A DNA stretch of 64,000 nt from Paramoeba atlantica (taxonomy: Eukaryota > Protista > Discosea), in NCBI GenBank assembly GCA_977017575.1, contig CDRNVI010000024.1, positions 1 through 64,000 on the forward strand. Reading direction: 5' to 3'. The notes under the pieces are model-generated. The model worked only from the letters and a program-made list of their open reading frames with translations, did not search any database and was not told where the DNA came from. The position numbers were made by a program, and so were the translations under genes. Of the stretch, positions 2,341-39,081 are shown one piece after another. How positions within the stretch are numbered: the first letter of the stretch is position 1; each line of letters starts with the position of its first letter.

Positions 2341-2600
2341 TGCTCCTCTTCCTCTTTCTTCCTCTTTCTTCCTCTTTGCTCCTTGTTTAGGGTGACACTA
2401 ATCTGTTGCTGGCTGTATCGCCGTTCCAGAAGGCTGGTCACTAGTCCAATTACTTCGCCGTCTACTTTCCGGTGGCGGACCAAGCGCTTTGACATTGTAT
2501 TCTTCGCCGTTCGTTCGGCCAAGCGAGGGTCATACACGTAGCACTCGAACCGCTCCCGGATTACGAAAATTTGTATGTGTGCAAAGTTAAATCTCATAAT

Positions 2601-3465
2601 CCAAAATCCAAATCATTCCGGATCGCTCCGGATGGTCACTGGCAAGCCAGGCCCTTCACAGACAGATTTGGAAGTTCCGAGGCCGACGTCCTCTACCAGT
2701 TTCCGCTTTTCCAAGGCGGCACCAACGTGCTGTTGCCAACACGCTGCGTCGACGAATTGTACGTCAACACGGCTTACCCAAGAGGTGTAAGCCGGGTAAG
2801 GGAGCTGGTTCCCTGAGGGGAGGGTCCGGGACGATCCTCCGAGTACTGGGCCTAGTTGGTTATCAGCCCAGCCTCTTAGAGTGAGGCCGCCGGGGATATT
2901 GCGATGAGCGGGTTTGAAGAAGAAGAAGAAGAAGAAGACACGGAGGGCTCTGCAGCGCCAACCGTTAGGGTAGAGTCTCAGGCCACCGACCTTCATCGTG
3001 TTGCTACCCCCTTCCCAGACGGCACTCGACGCCTTGCGGCCCGAGCACGGCTACCCAACCGTAGCTACCAGGACGGGCGTCCACCCCGTTGCATCGTGTA
3101 GGCTGTGTCTCAAGCCTCCTTTGCGTAAGCATCTCGCAATTTATCGGCTGCGCTGGAGCCTGGTTCAGCTCGGCGGTTCCGGGTCGGTCCTCCAGGGGAG
3201 CGGGGTTGGGTGTGGGCCTTGAAGGCACTCCTGATCGCTTTCCCTTTGCAGTGAGGCCGCCAGGTTGCGAGTTTTGTCGATAGCGGGAATCGAACCCACA
3301 ACCTGCAGGTTGTAAGGCCCACCGTCTAACAACTACGCGAGCACCGCGGGTTTAAACTCGCCGTCTGAGCACCATGTGCTTCAAACTTTGAATTCTTGCC
3401 CCTCCGCCACCTCCGCCCCTTTTTAGCTTCTCATACCAACAAGGTACAGAAATTGCATCTTTATC
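2601..3465 (-). mobile_element. Composite retro-insertion: SL-gene fragment + SINE A, with SINE B nested in it
   Basis: Flanked by 15-bp TSD GTTAAATCTCATAAT (2586-2600, 3466-3480) that splits an RNase H motif (KVKSHN|GNEYSDKADVLA). Confidence 0.85.
2919..3345 (-). mobile_element. tRNA-headed SINE family B, full-length, (TTC)n tail
   Basis: tRNA-like head GGTGCTCGCGTAGTTGTTAGAC...CTTACAA...GTGGGTTCGATTCCCGC; TSD GCGGGTTT(G/A)AA at 2908-2918 and 3346-3356. Confidence 0.85.
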
Positions 3466-3468
3466 GTT
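3425..3468 (-). ncRNA. Spliced-leader RNA gene fragment (3' part of exon + first 12 nt of intron)
   Basis: AACGATAAAGATGCAATTTCTGTACCTTGTTG|GTATGAGAAGCT resembles the kinetoplastid SL exon end (TTTCTGTACTATATTG) and the T. brucei intron start GTATGAGAAGCT; truncated, not a complete gene. Confidence 0.8.
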
Positions 3469-3689
3469 AAATCTCATAATGGGAACGAATATAGCGACAA
3501 AGCTGATGTCTTGGCTCTCTCGGCGTCACGAAGACCTTTAAAATCACAAGCGGCAAAGAGGTTGAAGACGATAAAGGCTCCTTCTTCTTCTTCTGACCCC
3601 GTATCCTCGCCAGAAGTGACACTCATATTGCGCCCAAGAAGGAATGTTGACACTATTTCATCCATACGCAAGAATCCAGCGCAAGAATC

Positions 3690-3895
3690 AACACCAGCTT
3701 GAACCCAGGACCTCGTACACTAAAACAACTTCAAAACAATGGGAAAATCTTTTTCTAAAGGAGGTAAACAAGGGGTTCTACGAAACCCTACAGTGCATTG
3801 AAGAAGGGCGGCAACGATTTCCAATCGGGCCAAATGAAACCCACATTTATACAGATGGAGCACGAATCGTTAAAAAGGATGAAACTCACACAGGT
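3690..3895 (+). pseudogene. LINE relic, region before and start of RNase H
   Basis: SKQWENL...LQCIEEG...ETHIYTDG, homologous to 7262-7445 and 9620-9750. Confidence 0.7.
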
Positions 3896-3899
3896 TGTG

Positions 3900-4022
3900 C
3901 CCGCCCATCGCAATATTCCAGGCGGCCTCACTCTAAGAGGCTGGGCTGATAACCGAATAGGCCCAGTACTCGGAGGACCGTCCCGGACCCTCCCCTCAGG
4001 GAACCAGCTCCCTTACCCGGCT
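3900..4022 (+). mobile_element. Internal fragment of SINE family A
   Basis: catcgcaatattccaggcggcctcactctaagaggctggg...cccttacccggc matches the SINE A core. Confidence 0.85.
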
Positions 4023-5924: not shown

Positions 5925-7445
5925 ATGGCGAAGAGGATTGGGGCCATAGGGTCCCAATTTATAACCACTTTTAAAGTGGTTTGCGATTTCTTTTCAAACA
6001 TAGGAAACGACGATCGGGGAAACCGAGACATCGAATTTGACGAGGCGAGGAAATCATTGATTCCAATAAGAGATGAATGGTTTACCGAAGAAGAGTTTCA
6101 GATTAGAGCCCCCAGGCTAGCACGAAACAAAGCCCTTGGAATTGATGAAATACCCGTCGAAGTGCTTATTATGATGGTGGAACACGGAAAATTACGGCGC
6201 ACACTCCCTGATCTTATCAATAATGTCTCCGAAACTGGTGTTGCCCCCGGCTGTTGGAAGAACGTGCTACAAGTTTCAATTCCGAAAAAGGGTAATCTTA
6301 CTCAAATCAACAATTGGCGCCCCATATGCCTTGTCAAAAGCGTGGTCAAACTGATGATATTGCAGCGCATTCGGCCTTCGATTGAATCAGTGCTTCGCGG
6401 GAGTCAATTTGGTTTTCGATCAGAACGATCGACTGCAGGGGCTCAGCGGTTGCTTAATGAAACGAAGACTCGAGCATCCAGAGATAAATCGGGAATCCAA
6501 GAGGTGAGGTTGCGGGGTATTAACTGTGCTGATGAAATTGCCCTGCTGGCTCCCACAAAGGGTGAACTGTCAAAGATGATTGACTCTACCGCACACGAAG
6601 CGAAACAAGCTAATTTACACATCGCCGTTGGCCAGAATAAAACTGTTTGGTTGGCTTTTGGAAAAATTCCTGGTGGGACGCGCGATCTACGTAGTAACTC
6701 ATTCGGCAAGATTCCATATGTCGACAAATACCGTTATTTAGGGAATATGCAAGATGCGTCCAACTATTCTTCTTCTGTGAAAGATAGGCTCCGACTAACG
6801 TGGGCAGGGTTTCGGAAACTCAAGGGCATTTGGGAATCACCACTGAGCGTGGCGACAAAATTGCCATTATTTGACTGGTATACCCCGTACTCACATTTGG
6901 AGCAGCTGCTATAACGATTCCTAATTACATGATTCGCTCAATTGAGGTTGAAATCAATATGATGCGGAGATTCGCTTGTCAATGCGCGAAGCTGGACGAA
7001 CTTGGGCACTGTTACCCACTGGAGTCTCTGTATTTTGGAACGCCACGATTCTCAACCGTGCACCACGTGAGCCGCGTAAAGCTTGTTGGCCATACCCTCC
7101 GACATTCCCCGACTTTTCAGCACCTTCTAAAATGGAAATGCCGAGAAACACCACGCACTATGTCACCAGCTGAGGCATGCATTGGAGACTTAGGGATAAC
7201 TCTGGAAGAGACCTTAGTATACCCCCAAGATCGCGATCACTGGCGCACTCTGCTATAGTTTGCAGCAAACACTAGGACCACTGCCGAATAATACTCGCGT
7301 TATAACATCACAATGGAAGTCTCTGTAAGCGTGGCGTCGAAAAGGAAAACTTATGTGATTTACAATTCTTGGAAGAAGGTAGCGACTCATTCCCTATTAA
7401 AGATAAAGAAGCTCATATTTACATAGATGCACCCGTAACTGAAGT
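5925..7445 (+). pseudogene. Degenerate RTE-like LINE: RT, post-RT region and start of RNase H
   Basis: KALGIDEIP, IPKKGNLTQINNWRPICL, QFGFRSERST, CADEIALLA (degenerate YADD), YRYLG, FRKLKGIW..LSVATKL, QDRDHWR, then LQFLEEG...HIYID. Confidence 0.85.
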
Positions 7446-9070: not shown

Positions 9071-9599
9071 GAGCAAGGCCCAACTGTGAGCGTAGCCCTG
9101 GGACATAATTATATTTTTTGGCGACTCGCGCGCTCCAGCGCGCGGGTCGTGCACTGAGGACCTATGTCTGCCACTTCCGCAGGATTGCGTATTTTTAATT
9201 TTCTATTCGCTTATTCATCGACGAAGTGGCAGCCACTTTTTTTTATCAATCAAAGAGGTAGAGAAGTACCCGAATTATTCATAGTTTTACCTTAGTTTGT
9301 TAGGACTCGAGGGTAAACTCGACAAAAGATACTTTGGCCCCCCGCTCTTAGTGCCGCGGTGAACTTGTAGTGCCGCATCACTTATAGTGCCGTTTTGAAA
9401 AATGACGAAAAGAGTTGTCCGAAAAAAAACTGACCATTTTTTTGACCAAAAAGGTTGAGTAAAAGTGGTGTAAATTTCTAATATTTTCATTTACGGAAAT
9501 CATTGAAACGTTATGCTTAGTTCCCTTCATCCATTCAATGACTGCTGATTCTCACGAAAACGAGGTGCCAGACAAAGCGCAAACTCGTGGATCGGCGAT

Positions 9600-10790
9600 T
9601 TCAGTCCCTTTGGGGCAGCCGTCTTGGGGCAAATGCTATCACATGTCAATTGCTCGTCAGGTCGGATACAAGGAATTACAATTCATCGAAGAAGGAAAAA
9701 CAGCGTTTCCCATCAGAGAGAATGAAACACATATTTACACTGACGGGTGGCTTATTTACAAAAAGAATCAACAACTCCAGTGATGCGGCATCGTAATTCT
9801 GAGAGGAAGCGAGCGCACACAGTTTAAGGGGATGAAACCTCCTCTAGAATATTCCAGCTCAATTCAATCGATCGAATCATATGCAGCAATTGAGGCCATA
9901 AAAGGTGCACAATCGTACGAGGGAGACGTCATCTTACACACAGATTTTAAATATATGGGAATTCTTTAACGAAATTGTTCACAGATACATGTATAGGCTC
10001 ATAGGTTACCAATCCTTCGAAGACGGTAAGACAATGGAATTGCTAAAAGATGCTTACTTTTACATTAAGACCAACAGAAATTTTTATTGCGTAAAAGTAA
10101 AATCCCATAACGAAAATTCATACAACGACACAGCCGACTCCATGGCGAAAGAGGCTTTTGAGCTAGCAAAACACGAGCTTTCTGTTAAGTATTTGGGAGA
10201 CGTGCTGTTTCTGGAAGGGAAAAGAAAGACGGGTCAAAACCTGGGTCCCCGCTTAGCTAAAACTCAGCGTAAGCGACAAGGTGCCAATACAGAACAATCT
10301 CAGCCAACTGAAAAAACGTTCAAGGAACCGCTGTCTGCAAAATCCAAAATACGCGGAAACTGTCAAAAATACATATAAGAAAAACGATAAGATATTAACG
10401 ATAAGATATTAAACGATAATACGTATAAGAAAAACGATAATCAGGAAAGCAGTGATCAACATACCGTCAAACGATCTAGGAATTCGACGCGCAACATGAC
10501 CTCAACTGTGTTAAATACGAAAAAGCAGAAAAACAAAGATTCTGTCCCAGAGCCTCCACGAACAGCTCGACCTAATACAAATATACTAGTAAAAGCGCGT
10601 TCGAATCATCCGCAAAAGAAGAGGTTAAAAGATACAGGAGAGGAAGATACCAAAGTTTCAACAGGTGAAAAACTCAAAGAAGGTCGTCATAAGACTACGA
10701 AAACAACGCAGGTATTGTTAAGTTCGAGATCGAATACAGGGGGGAAATTAAGTTATGTCAACAAAAGTCGTGTTAATTTCTGGGATTAAC
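9600..10790 (+). pseudogene. LINE RNase HI domain + basic tail (frameshifted)
   Basis: IYTDG, SIESYAAIEAI, VILHTDFKY, KVKSHNENSYNDTADSMAKEA: all four RNase HI acidic motifs. Confidence 0.8.
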
Positions 10791-11425: not shown

Positions 11426-12019
11426 AGTTTCTTGACGTCTTGTTGTGCTGACACCGGGTAGCTCCACAACATGGGAGATAGGGGCGCCGAAGGGCGGCGA
11501 AAAGAGGCGCGGTGGAGATCGAAAGGGCGGGGGAGAGTGCAGCGGCGGGAGAGCGCGGCGGGGAGCGCGACGGAGAGAGTGGCGGTGAGAGAAGTCGGCG
11601 AAGGGGGCGGCGAAGGGGCGACGAGGGGGGCGGCGAAGGGCGGAGAAGGGGGCGGAGAAGGGGACGGAGAAGGGGGGGCGAAGAGGGCGAAGGGGGCGGT
11701 GAAGGGGCGGCGAAAAGGGCGGCGAAGGGGGATGAAAGGGGCGGCGAAGCAGGGGGTGAAGGGGGGGCAGGAGCACAGGAGGGGGGCCAGGAGGGCGGCG
11801 CTGGTGGTGGGTAAGCGGGGCGGCGAAGGACGCGCAGGAGGGGGGGGCAGGAGGGCGGCGCTGGTGGTGAGCGGGGCGGCGAAGGACGCGCAGAGCAGTG
11901 GGCGGGGAGGGCGGGGGGCGAAAGGGGGGGGCGACGAAGTCAGCGCAGGAGGGGGGAAAAGAGGCAGCGAAGAAGGGGGCGCAGGGTAAAATGGTGTTGT
12001 GTAAATTTTCAACAAGGTA
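11426..12019 (-). repeat. GC-rich, strand-skewed dispersed repeat with SL remnant at its 5' end
   Basis: TACCTTGTTG at 12010-12019; C-rich body; terminal motif shared with 27505-27542. Confidence 0.7.
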
Positions 12020-12388: not shown

Positions 12389-14655
12389 TTATTCGGTGGA
12401 GCGTCGTGGGTTACACCATTTATCGAGCCGTCCTTGGAATGATTTTCGTGCCTGGACGCTTTTCCCACGCTTAAAGGCATCTTCGATTCTCTTAGCTTCG
12501 TCTCTCTCATCGTCATCGCTTGGTGGAACAAAGACATATCCTTCTAAACAATTCACATGCGACCACGATGCATCACAAGGGTCGATATACCCCAAGCTTT
12601 TGAATTGTTGAACAACGTTCATAGAAGAGGAAAGGGTCCCTGATTCATCAAGAGAGTCGTTGTCGAGGTTTATAACTTGTTCGTGCGCTCGGGCAACGGC
12701 ATTATGCATCCATTGTCTTTTTTGGCGGGCGGTCCGACGGATATGTTGTTCTCTGTGCCAAATGTTTACTTGCTCGCGTTTGTACGAAGAAGCATAAAAT
12801 ACATCAATCCATTGGATCCAGGATGTTGTTGCAGGGGGTAATATGGCACAATAGCAGTTAGCCACAGTGGCAAACGCATCGAGAACGTCACTTGTTATGT
12901 GAGATCGGCAGGAGTCTAGATAAACTAAAGTGTGGCCTGCGTCATTTATATCCAGTTCACGTTTGAGAAAGGGAATAAAGTCTTGGAGAAAAAAATCTTT
13001 GTTCACGACACCTTTCGGAGTAAAAGCTCGAGCCGTCCTTGCATCAAATATCTCGTGACTAGATCCTTTTCCAGCTCCTTTCCACACGATAAAAGGTTTT
13101 AGAAAGAAATGACTCGTTGGACTTCCATTTTTGTCCAGTTTCACGCCAGCACCGCAGATAAGCGTTGCGCATCGCTTCATATCATTCGGATTGCAACGCC
13201 CTCGTACATCTTCTTCTCCTCGCTGTGCAATTGTTTTTAAAGATTTCATGGACCCGCGAAATGATATGGGAATTTCATCAAAGTTCAGAACGGAACGAAA
13301 CTTTTTTGTTTTAAGACAGCGATAGGCAAACGTATGAAAGGAATGAATTCTTTTCTTTATCTCTTCACTTGATAGCTGAGTTGATCTCTTTACTAATCTT
13401 ATAGACCATTTGTAAGAGTGGAGGAATCTCCCTATCCTACGTTCGCTTACTCTTGTAATCCCCCGTGCTTTGTTCCGCTCTGGTGATTTGCGGTTTTCCT
13501 TTTTCAGCATGCGAAATGCCTCTTGGCGCACCATCTCGGTTGTTATCAAAGCATCGTTCTCTCGAGCTCCAAGAATAAAATAATGCAATTGTTGTTTTAA
13601 CCATTTCAGTTTATGCCCCTTTACATGCCTTTTACGCTTTTGACTATGCCTAGGAATATTAGAGTATGCCATAACTTGCTTTTTGTTAAAAATGTGGACA
13701 CGTTTCTTAGGGAATCGCTTGTCGATCCAAGAGTTTAACTTGCGGAGTGGTCCATAAGCATCTCGATCTTGTTGCGACCAGGAAATCCACTTCTCATATA
13801 TTACACGCTTTTGTCTAGCCGTCCAAATCATCCAAATCCAAATCATTCCGGATTGCTCCGGATGGTCACTGGCAAGCCAGACCCTTCACAGACAGATTTG
13901 GAAGTTCCGAGGCCGACGTTCTCTACCAGTTTCCGCTTGTCCAAGGCGGCACCAACGTGCTGTTGCCAACACGCTGCGTCGACGAATTGTACGTCAACAC
14001 GGCTTACCCAAGAGTTTTAAGCCGGGTAAGGGAGCTGGTTCCCTGAGGGGAGGGTCCGGGACGGTCCTCCGAGTACTGGGCCTAGTCGGTTCTCAGCCCA
14101 GCCTCTTAGAGTGAGGCCGCCAGGAATATTGCGATGAGCGGGTTTGAACTCGCCGTCTGAGCACCATGTGCTTCAAACTTTGAGTTCTTGCCACTCCGCC
14201 ACCTCATATATTACACGCTTTTGTCTAGCCGTGGATTCCACTCGACCGCGCACACCCTGGTCTATATGACGCCCCGTATATACTACGGAATGTTGTTTTT
14301 TGCGCTCGTTCTTGTCTTTCCCTCCAACAGTCAGCTCCGCTCCGTTATCTTCATCATCCGAAGTTGAATTACTCTTAATTTTACTTTCGCTCGCACTTTC
14401 AACATTATATCCTATTTCTTCTTCGCTTGAATTCACACTTTCACATTCGCTTTCACTTTCGCTCTCGCTAGCACTTTCACTTTCTCCATCGCTTCCGCTA
14501 CCAATTAAGTCCGACGAGTCATCAAGCATTTCTACCCCTTCATCATCCTCAAGGGACATAATCTCATCGTTTTCCTGAACGTAGGTTGGGTCACACTCTG
14601 CCTGAGCCAATCTATGAAGGGTCAAACTTTCGGCGAAAAAATCTCCTTCTCCCAT
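12389..14655 (-). pseudogene. pogo/DDE_1 transposase interrupted by SINE A
   Basis: CENP-B-like HTH, VLNFDEIP, LVYLDSCRSH, ILPPATTSWIQWIDV; ORFs 14173-14667 and 12389-13846 join in frame at RQKRVIYE once the SINE and one TSD are removed. Confidence 0.85.
13823..14205 (-). mobile_element. tRNA-headed SINE family A, full-length, long TSD
   Basis: TSD (CTC)ATATATTACACGCTTTTGTCTAGCCGT at 13793-13822 and 14203-14232; A box 14191-14201, B box 14140-14151. Confidence 0.9.
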
Positions 14656-34564: not shown

Positions 34565-35605
34565 CTAAAGTGAATCGCTTAGCTCCGGGAGCGGCTGATC
34601 GGAAACCTCACCGCATTTTGATGAGGCATATTTCCGTTTCACCGCGGTGTACTTGCTGCTCAGCAACACGTGGGCGTACTCCAATAACTGCTGGGCGACA
34701 CTAAAGACATCGGGTAGAGTGTATCCCGAGTAGTGTTGCATCAGAGGAGTCCATGGCTCCGTGTGGCCCCGCGTACGACATGCGAGATACACACAGGCGG
34801 CAGCCACTAGACTCGGCAGATATCCGTACATCGCGTAGCTCAGTAGGGATATCTCCGAGTAGTAAAAGGTGGCATGTGTCAATGAAGTGTCGGCGTCCAT
34901 CACGTCTAACAGACGGCTTGTGAAGTGCATTACATTCGGAGTTGTCAGTCGGAAGTGAAGCGCTCCACAAATAAGTCGTTCCATAGTGAGAATATCTTCT
35001 CGGGAGTACGTGTTGGCGCTAATGTACACACAGTCTTTAATTTCAGGTGGCCATATTTCCTCATATTTAGCCGCGAGCAGTATCGCGGTAACACCCACGA
35101 GCTGAAGTGTAGATCGAGTGGTGCGTGCGACGGAGAGGTATCGGTCAACAATATCGACGGCAAGGAAGAGTGTCTCGGGCCGACACTTGAACTTCAGGTG
35201 TACCTCGACAAGCCAGTCAACAAGAATGGTTCGCATTTTTTCGCTCAATTCAGGTTGATGACTCAAGTAGGGGTCGCGCGAAAGTTGTTCCTCGGCGTGT
35301 CTCAGACTTGACATGATATCTTTCATATACTCTGCGGCGTACTGGGGATCAGCGTGTCGTCGCTTGTCGGCCTGTGGGGAGGCAGAGAGGTACGGCTGTG
35401 ACTGTTCTACGGATTGGGTTAGAATCTTTTCTTTTTGAAGAAAAAGGGAAGGACAAGACTTGATTGCTTGACTGAGAACTGGAATCACATTGATATCTGC
35501 TTTAGCTAAAGGCATCGTACGTTGGGATAATCCTTTGGATGGCTGAGAATTTTGGGAGAGTGCAACTTCTTGCTGGGAAAGAGAAAGCGCTGCTTCGCGG
35601 GGCAT
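34565..35605 (-). CDS. Mitotic-type (A/B-like) cyclin, copy 1
   Basis: MRTILVDWLVEVHLKF; LQLVGVTAILLAAKYEEIWPP. Confidence 0.93.
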   Translation of the reverse strand: MPREAALSLSQQEVALSQNSQPSKGLSQRTMPLAKADINVIPVLSQAIKSCPSLFLQKEKILTQSVEQSQPYLSASPQADKRRHADPQYAAEYMKDIMSSLRHAEEQLSRDPYLSHQPELSEKMRTILVDWLVEVHLKFKCRPETLFLAVDIVDRYLSVARTTRSTLQLVGVTAILLAAKYEEIWPPEIKDCVYISANTYSREDILTMERLICGALHFRLTTPNVMHFTSRLLDVMDADTSLTHATFYYSEISLLSYAMYGYLPSLVAAACVYLACRTRGHTEPWTPLMQHYSGYTLPDVFSVAQQLLEYAHVLLSSKYTAVKRKYASSKCGEVSDQPLPELSDSL

Positions 35606-38061: not shown

Positions 38062-39081
38062 CTAAAAATCTTCCCTCTGTGGAAGAGAACAAGATGCCGC
38101 ATTTGCGTATTTATCCGTATCGTATTTCCGTTTCACCGCGGTGTACTTGCTGCTCAGCAACACGTGGGCGTACTCCAATAACTGCTGGGCGACACTAAAG
38201 ACATCGGGTAGAGTGTATCCCGAGTAGTGTTGCATCAGAGGAGTCCATGGCTCCGTGTGGCCCCGCGTACGACATGCGAGATACACACAGGCGGCAGCCA
38301 CTAGACTCGGCAGATATCCGTACATCGCGTAGCTCAGTAGGGATATCTCCGAGTAGTAAAAGGTGGCATGTGTCAATGAAGTGTCGGCGTCCATCACGTC
38401 TAACAGACGGCTTGTGAAGTGCATTACATTCGGAGTTGTCAGTCGGAAGTGAAGCGCTCCACAAATAAGTCGTTCCATAGTGAGAATATCTTCTCGGGAG
38501 TACGTGTTGGCGCTAATGTACACACAGTCTTTAATTTCAGGTGGCCATATTTCCTCATATTTAGCCGCGAGCAGTATCGCGGTAACACCCACGAGCTGAA
38601 GTGTAGATCGAGTGGTGCGTGCGACGGAGAGGTATCGGTCAACAATATCGACGGCAAGGAAGAGTGTCTCGGGCCGACACTTGAACTTCAGGTGTACCTC
38701 GACAAGCCAGTCAACAAGAATGGTTCGCATTTTTTCGCTCAACTCCGGTTGATGACTCAAGTAGGGGTCGCGCGAAAGTTGTTCCTCGGCGTGTCTCAGA
38801 CTTGACATGATATCTTTCATATACTCTGCGGCGTACTGGGGATCAGCGTGTCGTCGCTTGTCGGCCTGTGGGGAGGCAGAAAGGTATGGGTGAGAAGATG
38901 AATTAGGATGAGCTAAGTGATGTTTCTTTCCAGCTGAATGTAGAGTGGCGTGACTTTTAATTGCATTGACGTTCGCGCTCGTTAGCGCCCCGGTACTCTG
39001 AGATACTATTTTTGGGTACTGGATTGTAAGGACATCGAATAGGGATTGTGCCTGTGTATGGGGTGTCGACTGAGGTATCAT
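38062..39081 (-). CDS. Mitotic-type cyclin, copy 2
   Basis: Cyclin box near-identical to copy 1, different termini. Confidence 0.93.
   Translation of the reverse strand: MIPQSTPHTQAQSLFDVLTIQYPKIVSQSTGALTSANVNAIKSHATLHSAGKKHHLAHPNSSSHPYLSASPQADKRRHADPQYAAEYMKDIMSSLRHAEEQLSRDPYLSHQPELSEKMRTILVDWLVEVHLKFKCRPETLFLAVDIVDRYLSVARTTRSTLQLVGVTAILLAAKYEEIWPPEIKDCVYISANTYSREDILTMERLICGALHFRLTTPNVMHFTSRLLDVMDADTSLTHATFYYSEISLLSYAMYGYLPSLVAAACVYLACRTRGHTEPWTPLMQHYSGYTLPDVFSVAQQLLEYAHVLLSSKYTAVKRKYDTDKYANAASCSLPQREDF

Follow-up and report, generated by a model that had tools for sequence, protein, structure and literature searches.

A piece of unspliced spliced-leader (SL) RNA is fused to the 5' end of a retroposed element, here called SINE A, in a window of 64,000 nucleotides (the whole stretch of DNA that was analysed). 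Read from 5' to 3' on the minus strand, host sequence is followed by a target-site duplication (TSD), SL RNA nt 4-50, the linker AAAAAGGG, a full-length SINE A with its tail, the second copy of the TSD and again host sequence. With a confidence little better than even we favour the view that this block is a bipartite chimeric retrocopy from one event of target-primed reverse transcription, in which the reverse transcriptase (RT) switched from SINE A RNA to a 3'-shortened SL RNA. The initial annotation had considered such a template switch as well as a SINE that entered an SL gene and was re-mobilised from its promoter, and these two routes stay the leading ones with the first being favoured.

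Composition and setting of the chimeric block

The coordinates of all parts are collected in Table 1. The 15-mer ATTATGAGATTTAAC that forms the TSD occurs exactly twice in the 64 kb (2586-2600 and 3466-3480, both minus strand, 0 mismatches), compared with 0.01 occurrences expected in a window-wide count, and the 28-nt core covering exon and intron is present once against 0.00 expected from shuffles. The minus-strand string over the SL and SINE parts that was quoted in the initial annotation is found in the window, and its view of the whole block as one insertion was borne out by the exact 15-bp TSDs enclosing both parts. SL nt 4-50 and SINE A are fused head to tail and are both read on the minus strand. 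No second duplication is visible between the SL part and SINE A (at 3417-3425), and in the window sequence neither SINE A nor the SL piece has one of its own. Because exact 15-bp TSDs flank the entire block without a separate duplication for the SL or the SINE part, a single event is indicated; the SL piece has, as was proposed earlier, travelled together with SINE A inside one TSD. The flanks of the insertion belong to a decayed repeated element that is not an SL gene. Among the contig matches listed, paralogous contigs of this host repeat align to exactly 3466, and since they stop aligning there the insertion edge at this position is supported. The corresponding joint at the opposite edge is absent from the matches listed.

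Table 1. Parts of the chimeric block and further SL exon ends in the window
Feature	Position	Strand	Remarks
Left (5') TSD copy, ATTATGAGATTTAAC	3466..3480	minus	SL exon nt 4-9 coincide with its last 6 nt, TTTAAC (3471-3466)
Copy of SL exon nt 4-38	3437..3471	minus	blastn against the L001 SL gene and contigs of the RNA run
Exon segment 3' of the left TSD, GATAAAGATGCAATTTCTGTACCTTGTTG	3465-3437	minus	
Copy of SL intron nt 1-12, GTATGAGAAGCT	3425..3436	minus	blastn against L001; its end falls on the 3' base of predicted stem-loop I
8-nt linker, AAAAAGGG	3417..3424	minus	neither in the SL gene nor in other SINE A copies
SINE A, 5' part	3346..3416	minus	starts GCGGAGGTGGCGGAG, interrupted after AAACCCGC
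Nested SINE B	2916..3345	minus	weak tRNA-like head 3333-3275, (CTT)7 tail
SINE A, 3' part	2601..2915	minus	GATTTG-type simple tail (...GGAATGATTTGGATTTTGG)
Right (3') TSD copy, ATTATGAGATTTAAC	2586..2600	minus	
Last 14-15 nt of SL exon, no intron, joined to unrelated sequence	126-112, 14921-14908, 27730-27716	minus	

SINE A is represented by two further full copies in the window (copy 1, 1507-1136; copy 3, 14205-13821) on the same strand, and contig depth suggests hundreds of copies. SINE A copies have a GATTTG-type tail. Copies 1 and 3 start within a few nt of the same head position and neither carries an SL piece (0/2). The other SINE A 5' ends in the contigs matched over 6,000 letters also stop at the normal head without SL sequence. 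Copy 3 is flanked by a duplication of 27 bp, the studied copy (copy 2) by one of 15 bp, and the 3' part of the studied copy is 96% identical to copy 3. The head contains an A-box-like TGGCGGAGNGG and a B-box-like GAGTTTAAACC; it has no match to the Rfam tRNA model, and no tRNA was found by ARAGORN. A literature search retrieved no papers on tRNA-derived SINEs of kinetoplastids or on kinetoplastid SINEs with Pol III-type boxes. The studied copy was split after AAACCCGC by the unrelated SINE B (3345-2916, minus) that possesses its own 8-bp duplication AAACCCGC at 3353-3346 and 2915-2908 and whose tRNA-like head is weak (Rfam tRNA 20.2 bits, E 0.4). A 3' fragment of the SINE B family adjoins SINE A copy 1 (1130-1076), the two families have the short motif GGCGGCCTCAC in common, and copies 1 and 2 of SINE A sit within one repeated decayed non-LTR element.

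The junction of intron, linker and SINE was seen in one copy in the window and the contig matches over 6,000 letters, i.e. the contigs matched to this 6,000-letter region contain no second one. A joint 1132/3437 on opposite strands was considered as second copy of the chimera and rejected. Since the 35 letters on one side of the joint are those of the SL exon span 3437-3471, it is simply an SL exon attached at another place to SINE A in antisense orientation.

From ~12 kb onward the genes of the window lack introns and are arrayed on one strand. The dihydrolipoamide dehydrogenase encoded in the window is most similar to that of the prokinetoplastid PhF-6 (69%), with identities of 60-63% to Bodo, Trypanosoma and Diplonema. 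Because of this layout of the gene array and the dihydrolipoamide dehydrogenase similarity, the genome carrying the window is that of a kinetoplastid, probably a deep-branching one. The dihydrolipoamide dehydrogenase gene is flanked by two cyclin genes containing stretches (34629-34928 and 38123-38422, 3.5 kb apart) that are 100% identical over at least 300 nt, which by this identity points to gene conversion or tandem duplication in very recent time. Where the one-strand gene array meets the TE-rich region of 1-12 kb, a purine-rich degenerate tandem array of the GGCGAAGGGG type (11470-11970) exhibits strong GC and AT skew (GC skew 0.26). An ORF of 485 aa without Pfam match (12389-13846, minus) has its start within the tail of copy 3 of SINE A and could, from its position in the TE-rich zone, encode a transposase. 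In addition, there are RNase H-like ORF fragments (HIYTDG...) on the plus strand (3644-3949, 9538-9783 and 9905-10378) with a weak match to Pfam RNase_H (E 0.004) as well as C-terminal fragments of LINE ORF2 with the motif DRDHW (1791-2066 and 6929-7258). Judged by their sequences, both kinds of fragments are decayed non-LTR elements. The RT-like ORFs nearby have a weak RVT_1 match and otherwise match fragments from the same organism only.

Origin of the 5' piece

Positions 3471-3425 match nt 4-50 of an SL gene on the metagenome contig Ga0316204_10168667 (L001) in 45/47 letters (blastn, minus strand, E 3.9e-17), and the matched stretch comprises exon nt 4-38 plus intron nt 1-12. After intron nt 12 this gene reads TCGAACC and the window AAAAAGGGGCGG, but the reference stems from a metagenome relative or possibly from the same species, so that the point where SL homology ends might move by a few nt. 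L001 is the single match for the exon/intron 22-mer in the JGI metagenome contigs; the genome-contig and viral-contig collections gave no match. It is a 1.8-kb repeat unit of SL RNA and 5S rRNA (5S gene 98 bits) with the SL gene on the strand opposite to 5S, the exon at L001:26-63 (minus) and the start of the intron at L001:1-25 (minus). The two contig ends share 7 nt, and across their join the sequence folds into an RNA of ~109 nt whose three hairpins and T-run are typical of SL RNA. Tandem repeats of SL and 5S are known from bodonids and prokinetoplastids (PMC7859406). The L001 exon is identical to the leader in RNA contigs with the species label of the window, and because of this identity the environmental sample contains that species or one very close to it.

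Those RNA contigs come from a run of 2015. Two of them match 3437-3471 and 3437-3469 (depths 1448 and 1181, respectively) and part from the window sequence exactly at 3437, which is the last exon base and the predicted splice donor; the L001 exon has the same sequence as their loose end, GATACAGTTTCTGTACCTTGTTG. At three other loci of the window the last 14-15 nt of the exon are joined to unrelated sequence at this same border. The assignment of exon and intron is thus sound, since the L001 match, the break of the RNA contigs at 3437 and the three other window loci agree with it. The initial annotation had identified the piece as SL exon plus start of the intron with unspliced SL RNA or its gene as source, and this identification stands: as 12 nt of SL intron follow the exon, the source was not a spliced mRNA.

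Compared with the expressed SL the exon copy in the window differs by two transitions (GATGCAA vs GATACAG), in line with the ~4% divergence of the studied SINE A copy from copy 3. Only nt 4-50 of ~109 are present, i.e. the complete exon and the full intron of a functional SL gene are absent, and the chimeric copy is a dead copy without function as SL RNA gene. Neither a 5S gene nor an SL repeat was found in the window, where SL homology ends at intron nt 12. Rfam over the window returned nothing at gathering thresholds and no SL RNA family match at any threshold used. A full-text literature search with the 3' string of the SL exon found no paper, and exact-protein look-ups (ORFs of L001, the RT ORF and a 41-aa ORF across the junction) found none on record.

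The three short exon ends begin at nt 23-25, at nearly the same cut and close to nt 21, the 5' foot of stem-loop I. By their sequence these loci look like SL-capped retroposed units. A further SL exon end possibly occurs at 12010-12019 (minus). RNA contig record 24 (run X5) opens with the SL 3' end in reverse complement and continues with SL from nt 4; this inverted start is probably a hairpin artefact of library or assembly at capped 5' ends.

Junctions and possible routes to the fusion

On the 5' side the exon copy is unambiguous from nt 10 onward (3465; G10, A11 and T12 correspond to 3465-3463), and SL homology extends a further 6 nt (TTTAAC, SL nt 4-9) into the left TSD. As the same six bases are also found in the right TSD, TTTAAC belonged to the target. 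Therefore the 5' junction is a 6-nt microhomology, and the cDNA had reached at least nt 4-5. The chance of such a 6-nt match is ~1 in 4,000 if it were unrelated. The SL copy ends at nt 4-5 and nt 1-3 lie in the cap-4 region. In trypanosome SL RNA reverse transcription terminates at the methylated cap-4 nucleotides (PMC6173450), and by analogy we infer that an end at nt 4-5 would be expected from a capped SL RNA template.

The same junction bears on the proposal that the exon was cut near nt 11 by an element of the CRE/SLACS/CZAR type, leaving a remnant of 29 nt outside the TSD. The remnant lies inside the TSD and measures 35 nt (nt 4-38) if the common TTTAAC is counted. Elements of the SLACS/CZAR type insert between SL exon nt 11 and 12 (PMC5814959), but here SL homology is continuous across nt 10-12 and back to nt 4, and since the exon copy is unbroken at 11/12 this link falls away. 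That the locus represents an SL gene remnant disrupted by such a site-specific retrotransposon has next to no probability, even though elements of this kind occur in trypanosomatids with insertion at exon nt 11/12 (PMC5814959) and fragments of RT-like ORFs are found nearby. The intron stops at nt 12 with no remainder of an SL gene following it, the host is a repeated decayed element instead of an SL gene, and other repeats lie between the locus and the RT fragments in its neighbourhood.

At its 3' side the SL copy ends at nt 50. In the predicted fold of L001 SL RNA stem-loop I comprises nt 21-50, so nt 50 is its last paired base. Five A and three G separate this base from the start of the SINE A head. 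The mutated 47 nt of the window itself do not fold better than shuffles (z -1.16), and the structural argument therefore rests on the intact L001 gene. Under this predicted fold, an end at the stem base followed by A5 would fit the 3' end of a structured RNA fragment better than a random site of DNA insertion, and the former is favoured. Our conjecture is that the acceptor may have been an SL RNA fragment trimmed by exonuclease and oligoadenylated, and that the G3 of the linker may be non-templated.

In the template switch that we favour a LINE RT would have used the tail of a SINE A transcript for priming and would have copied this RNA up to its 5' end. The SINE A part is complete at the 5' end, as expected if the enzyme reached the end of this template before continuing. 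The RT would then have proceeded on the 5' domain of unspliced SL RNA, i.e. the leader sequence and stem-loop I. If this second template was a 3'-trimmed and oligoadenylated decay fragment of SL RNA, A5 would be explained. Having stopped at cap-4-methylated nucleotides around nt 4, the cDNA would have been joined to the target via the 6-nt match TTTAAC, and the copy would later have decayed by ~4%, including the two exon transitions, before it received SINE B. Against the switch stand several findings: one copy was seen in the window and the contigs matched over 6,000 letters, the acceptor point is internal to the ~109-nt SL RNA, in contrast with classic U6 chimeras, the linker AAAAAGGG matches neither the SL gene nor other SINE A copies, and the 47 nt of the window fold no better than shuffles.

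A rather unlikely but serious competitor is 5' transduction. SINE A would have inserted after intron nt 12 of an SL gene, and a capped transcript of SL(1-50) and SINE A, made from the strong SL promoter and recognised at its SINE tail by the LINE machinery, would have been retroposed. Exon plus intron, common orientation, the single TSD and the 5' end in the cap-4 region are explained equally well by this route. SL genes are numerous and highly transcribed, SL exon depth is far above single copy, and with hundreds of SINE A copies by depth a strike into the array is plausible. However, no source locus was seen in the window, in the one metagenome SL repeat or in the contigs matched over 6,000 letters; the SL end at the base of stem-loop I together with A5 would be a coincidence (~3 in 100 positions of the transcribed gene); and SL sequence is carried by 0/2 of the other SINE A copies in the window and by no other 5' end in the contigs. 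Ligation at the RNA level before reverse transcription, by which a cleaved 5' fragment of SL RNA and SINE A RNA would be joined by an RtcB-type ligase and retroposed as one template, would yield the same final structure and has been demonstrated for U6/LINE-1 chimeras (PMC6789731). It is nevertheless improbable here, as it predicts a direct junction and the 8 extra nt must belong to one of the RNAs. Moreover a SINE transcript of Pol III with its 5' triphosphate would need prior processing.

Still less credit is due to two independent abutting insertions, namely a retrocopy of an SL RNA fragment with a short A tail and an adjacent SINE A. A5 after the SL part resembles a very short poly(A) tail, and A-rich tails attract some LINE endonucleases. 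Each insertion should have left its own TSD, however, and the sole pair encloses both parts. Beyond the single event, the fusion might be recurrent, either because LINE RT regularly ends cDNAs on SL RNA or because an SL-SINE chimera became a source gene, with a class of SL-headed SINEs emerging that is driven by the SL gene context; we regard this as quite unlikely.

Meaning and comparison with known systems

A template switch at this locus would mean that in a presumably deep-branching kinetoplastid the retrotransposition machinery met unspliced and probably cap-4-bearing SL RNA, which would locate the RT step to the compartment of the nucleus that harbours SL RNA. The formation of snRNA/LINE chimeras would thus be extended to the donor RNA of trans-splicing and to a lineage for which our literature search found no described SINEs with Pol III boxes. 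The 5' end can be seen as natural footprint of a cellular RT that stopped at the cap region of SL, and the 3' end as footprint of a possible decay intermediate of SL RNA at the base of stem-loop I. In practical terms, the locus provides the SL sequence of the organism and the SL-5S repeat of a relative, useful for the annotation of trans-splice sites. A cellular function of this single dead copy is unlikely. If recurrent fusion were true, SL RNA would join tRNA, 7SL, 5S and U1/U2 as a fourth or fifth kind of SINE head, and elements would have a DNA-level route to gain a trans-splicing leader.

Chimeras of snRNA and LINE sequences that arise by template switching occur in several LINE clades (PMC4476161) and are known in mammals and fungi (PMC4476161; PMC2104539). 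The parts, their orientation, the one TSD, the tail and the small-RNA 5' end region of such chimeras are all found at the studied locus. As in U6/L1, U5/L1, U3/L1 and the MINE-type chimeras of Magnaporthe, a small nuclear RNA is placed 5' and a LINE-mobilised sequence 3' in one orientation within one TSD. Microhomology is present at the 5' junction of these chimeras, whose U5 and U3 parts are shortened at the 3' end (PMC4476161), and the SL part resembles the U5/L1 and U3/L1 chimeras in both respects (PMC4476161; PMC2104539). In contrast with the mammalian and fungal examples the small RNA is here the trans-splicing donor of a kinetoplastid, the SL RNA. On its 3' side SL RNA is paired with a full-length SINE, which even in mammals is a rare combination (PMC4476161). 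Further differences from U/L1 chimeras are the 8-nt linker and an SL part bounded by the stem-loop base and the cap-4 region. SINEU elements are SINEs with heads derived from U1/U2 snRNA (PMC4494074). They have in common with the present unit that a spliceosomal-type small RNA forms the 5' end of a SINE-like unit, but their heads define amplified families whereas here a single copy is known and normal SINE A lacks the SL piece.

Our literature searches found no report of SL RNA as partner in chimeras of the snRNA/LINE type. Retrocopies of trans-spliced RNAs also have an SL exon at the 5' end of the retroposed unit. Their exon joins the body at the splice junction, whereas here 12 nt of intron lie in between. 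SL relics in dinoflagellate genes are another example of this kind. Finally, SLACS, CZAR and CRE are a further case in which retrotransposition is linked with the SL RNA genes of kinetoplastids. While those elements enter SL genes at nt 11/12 (PMC5814959), at the present locus a copy of SL RNA has been taken to a site outside the SL genes.
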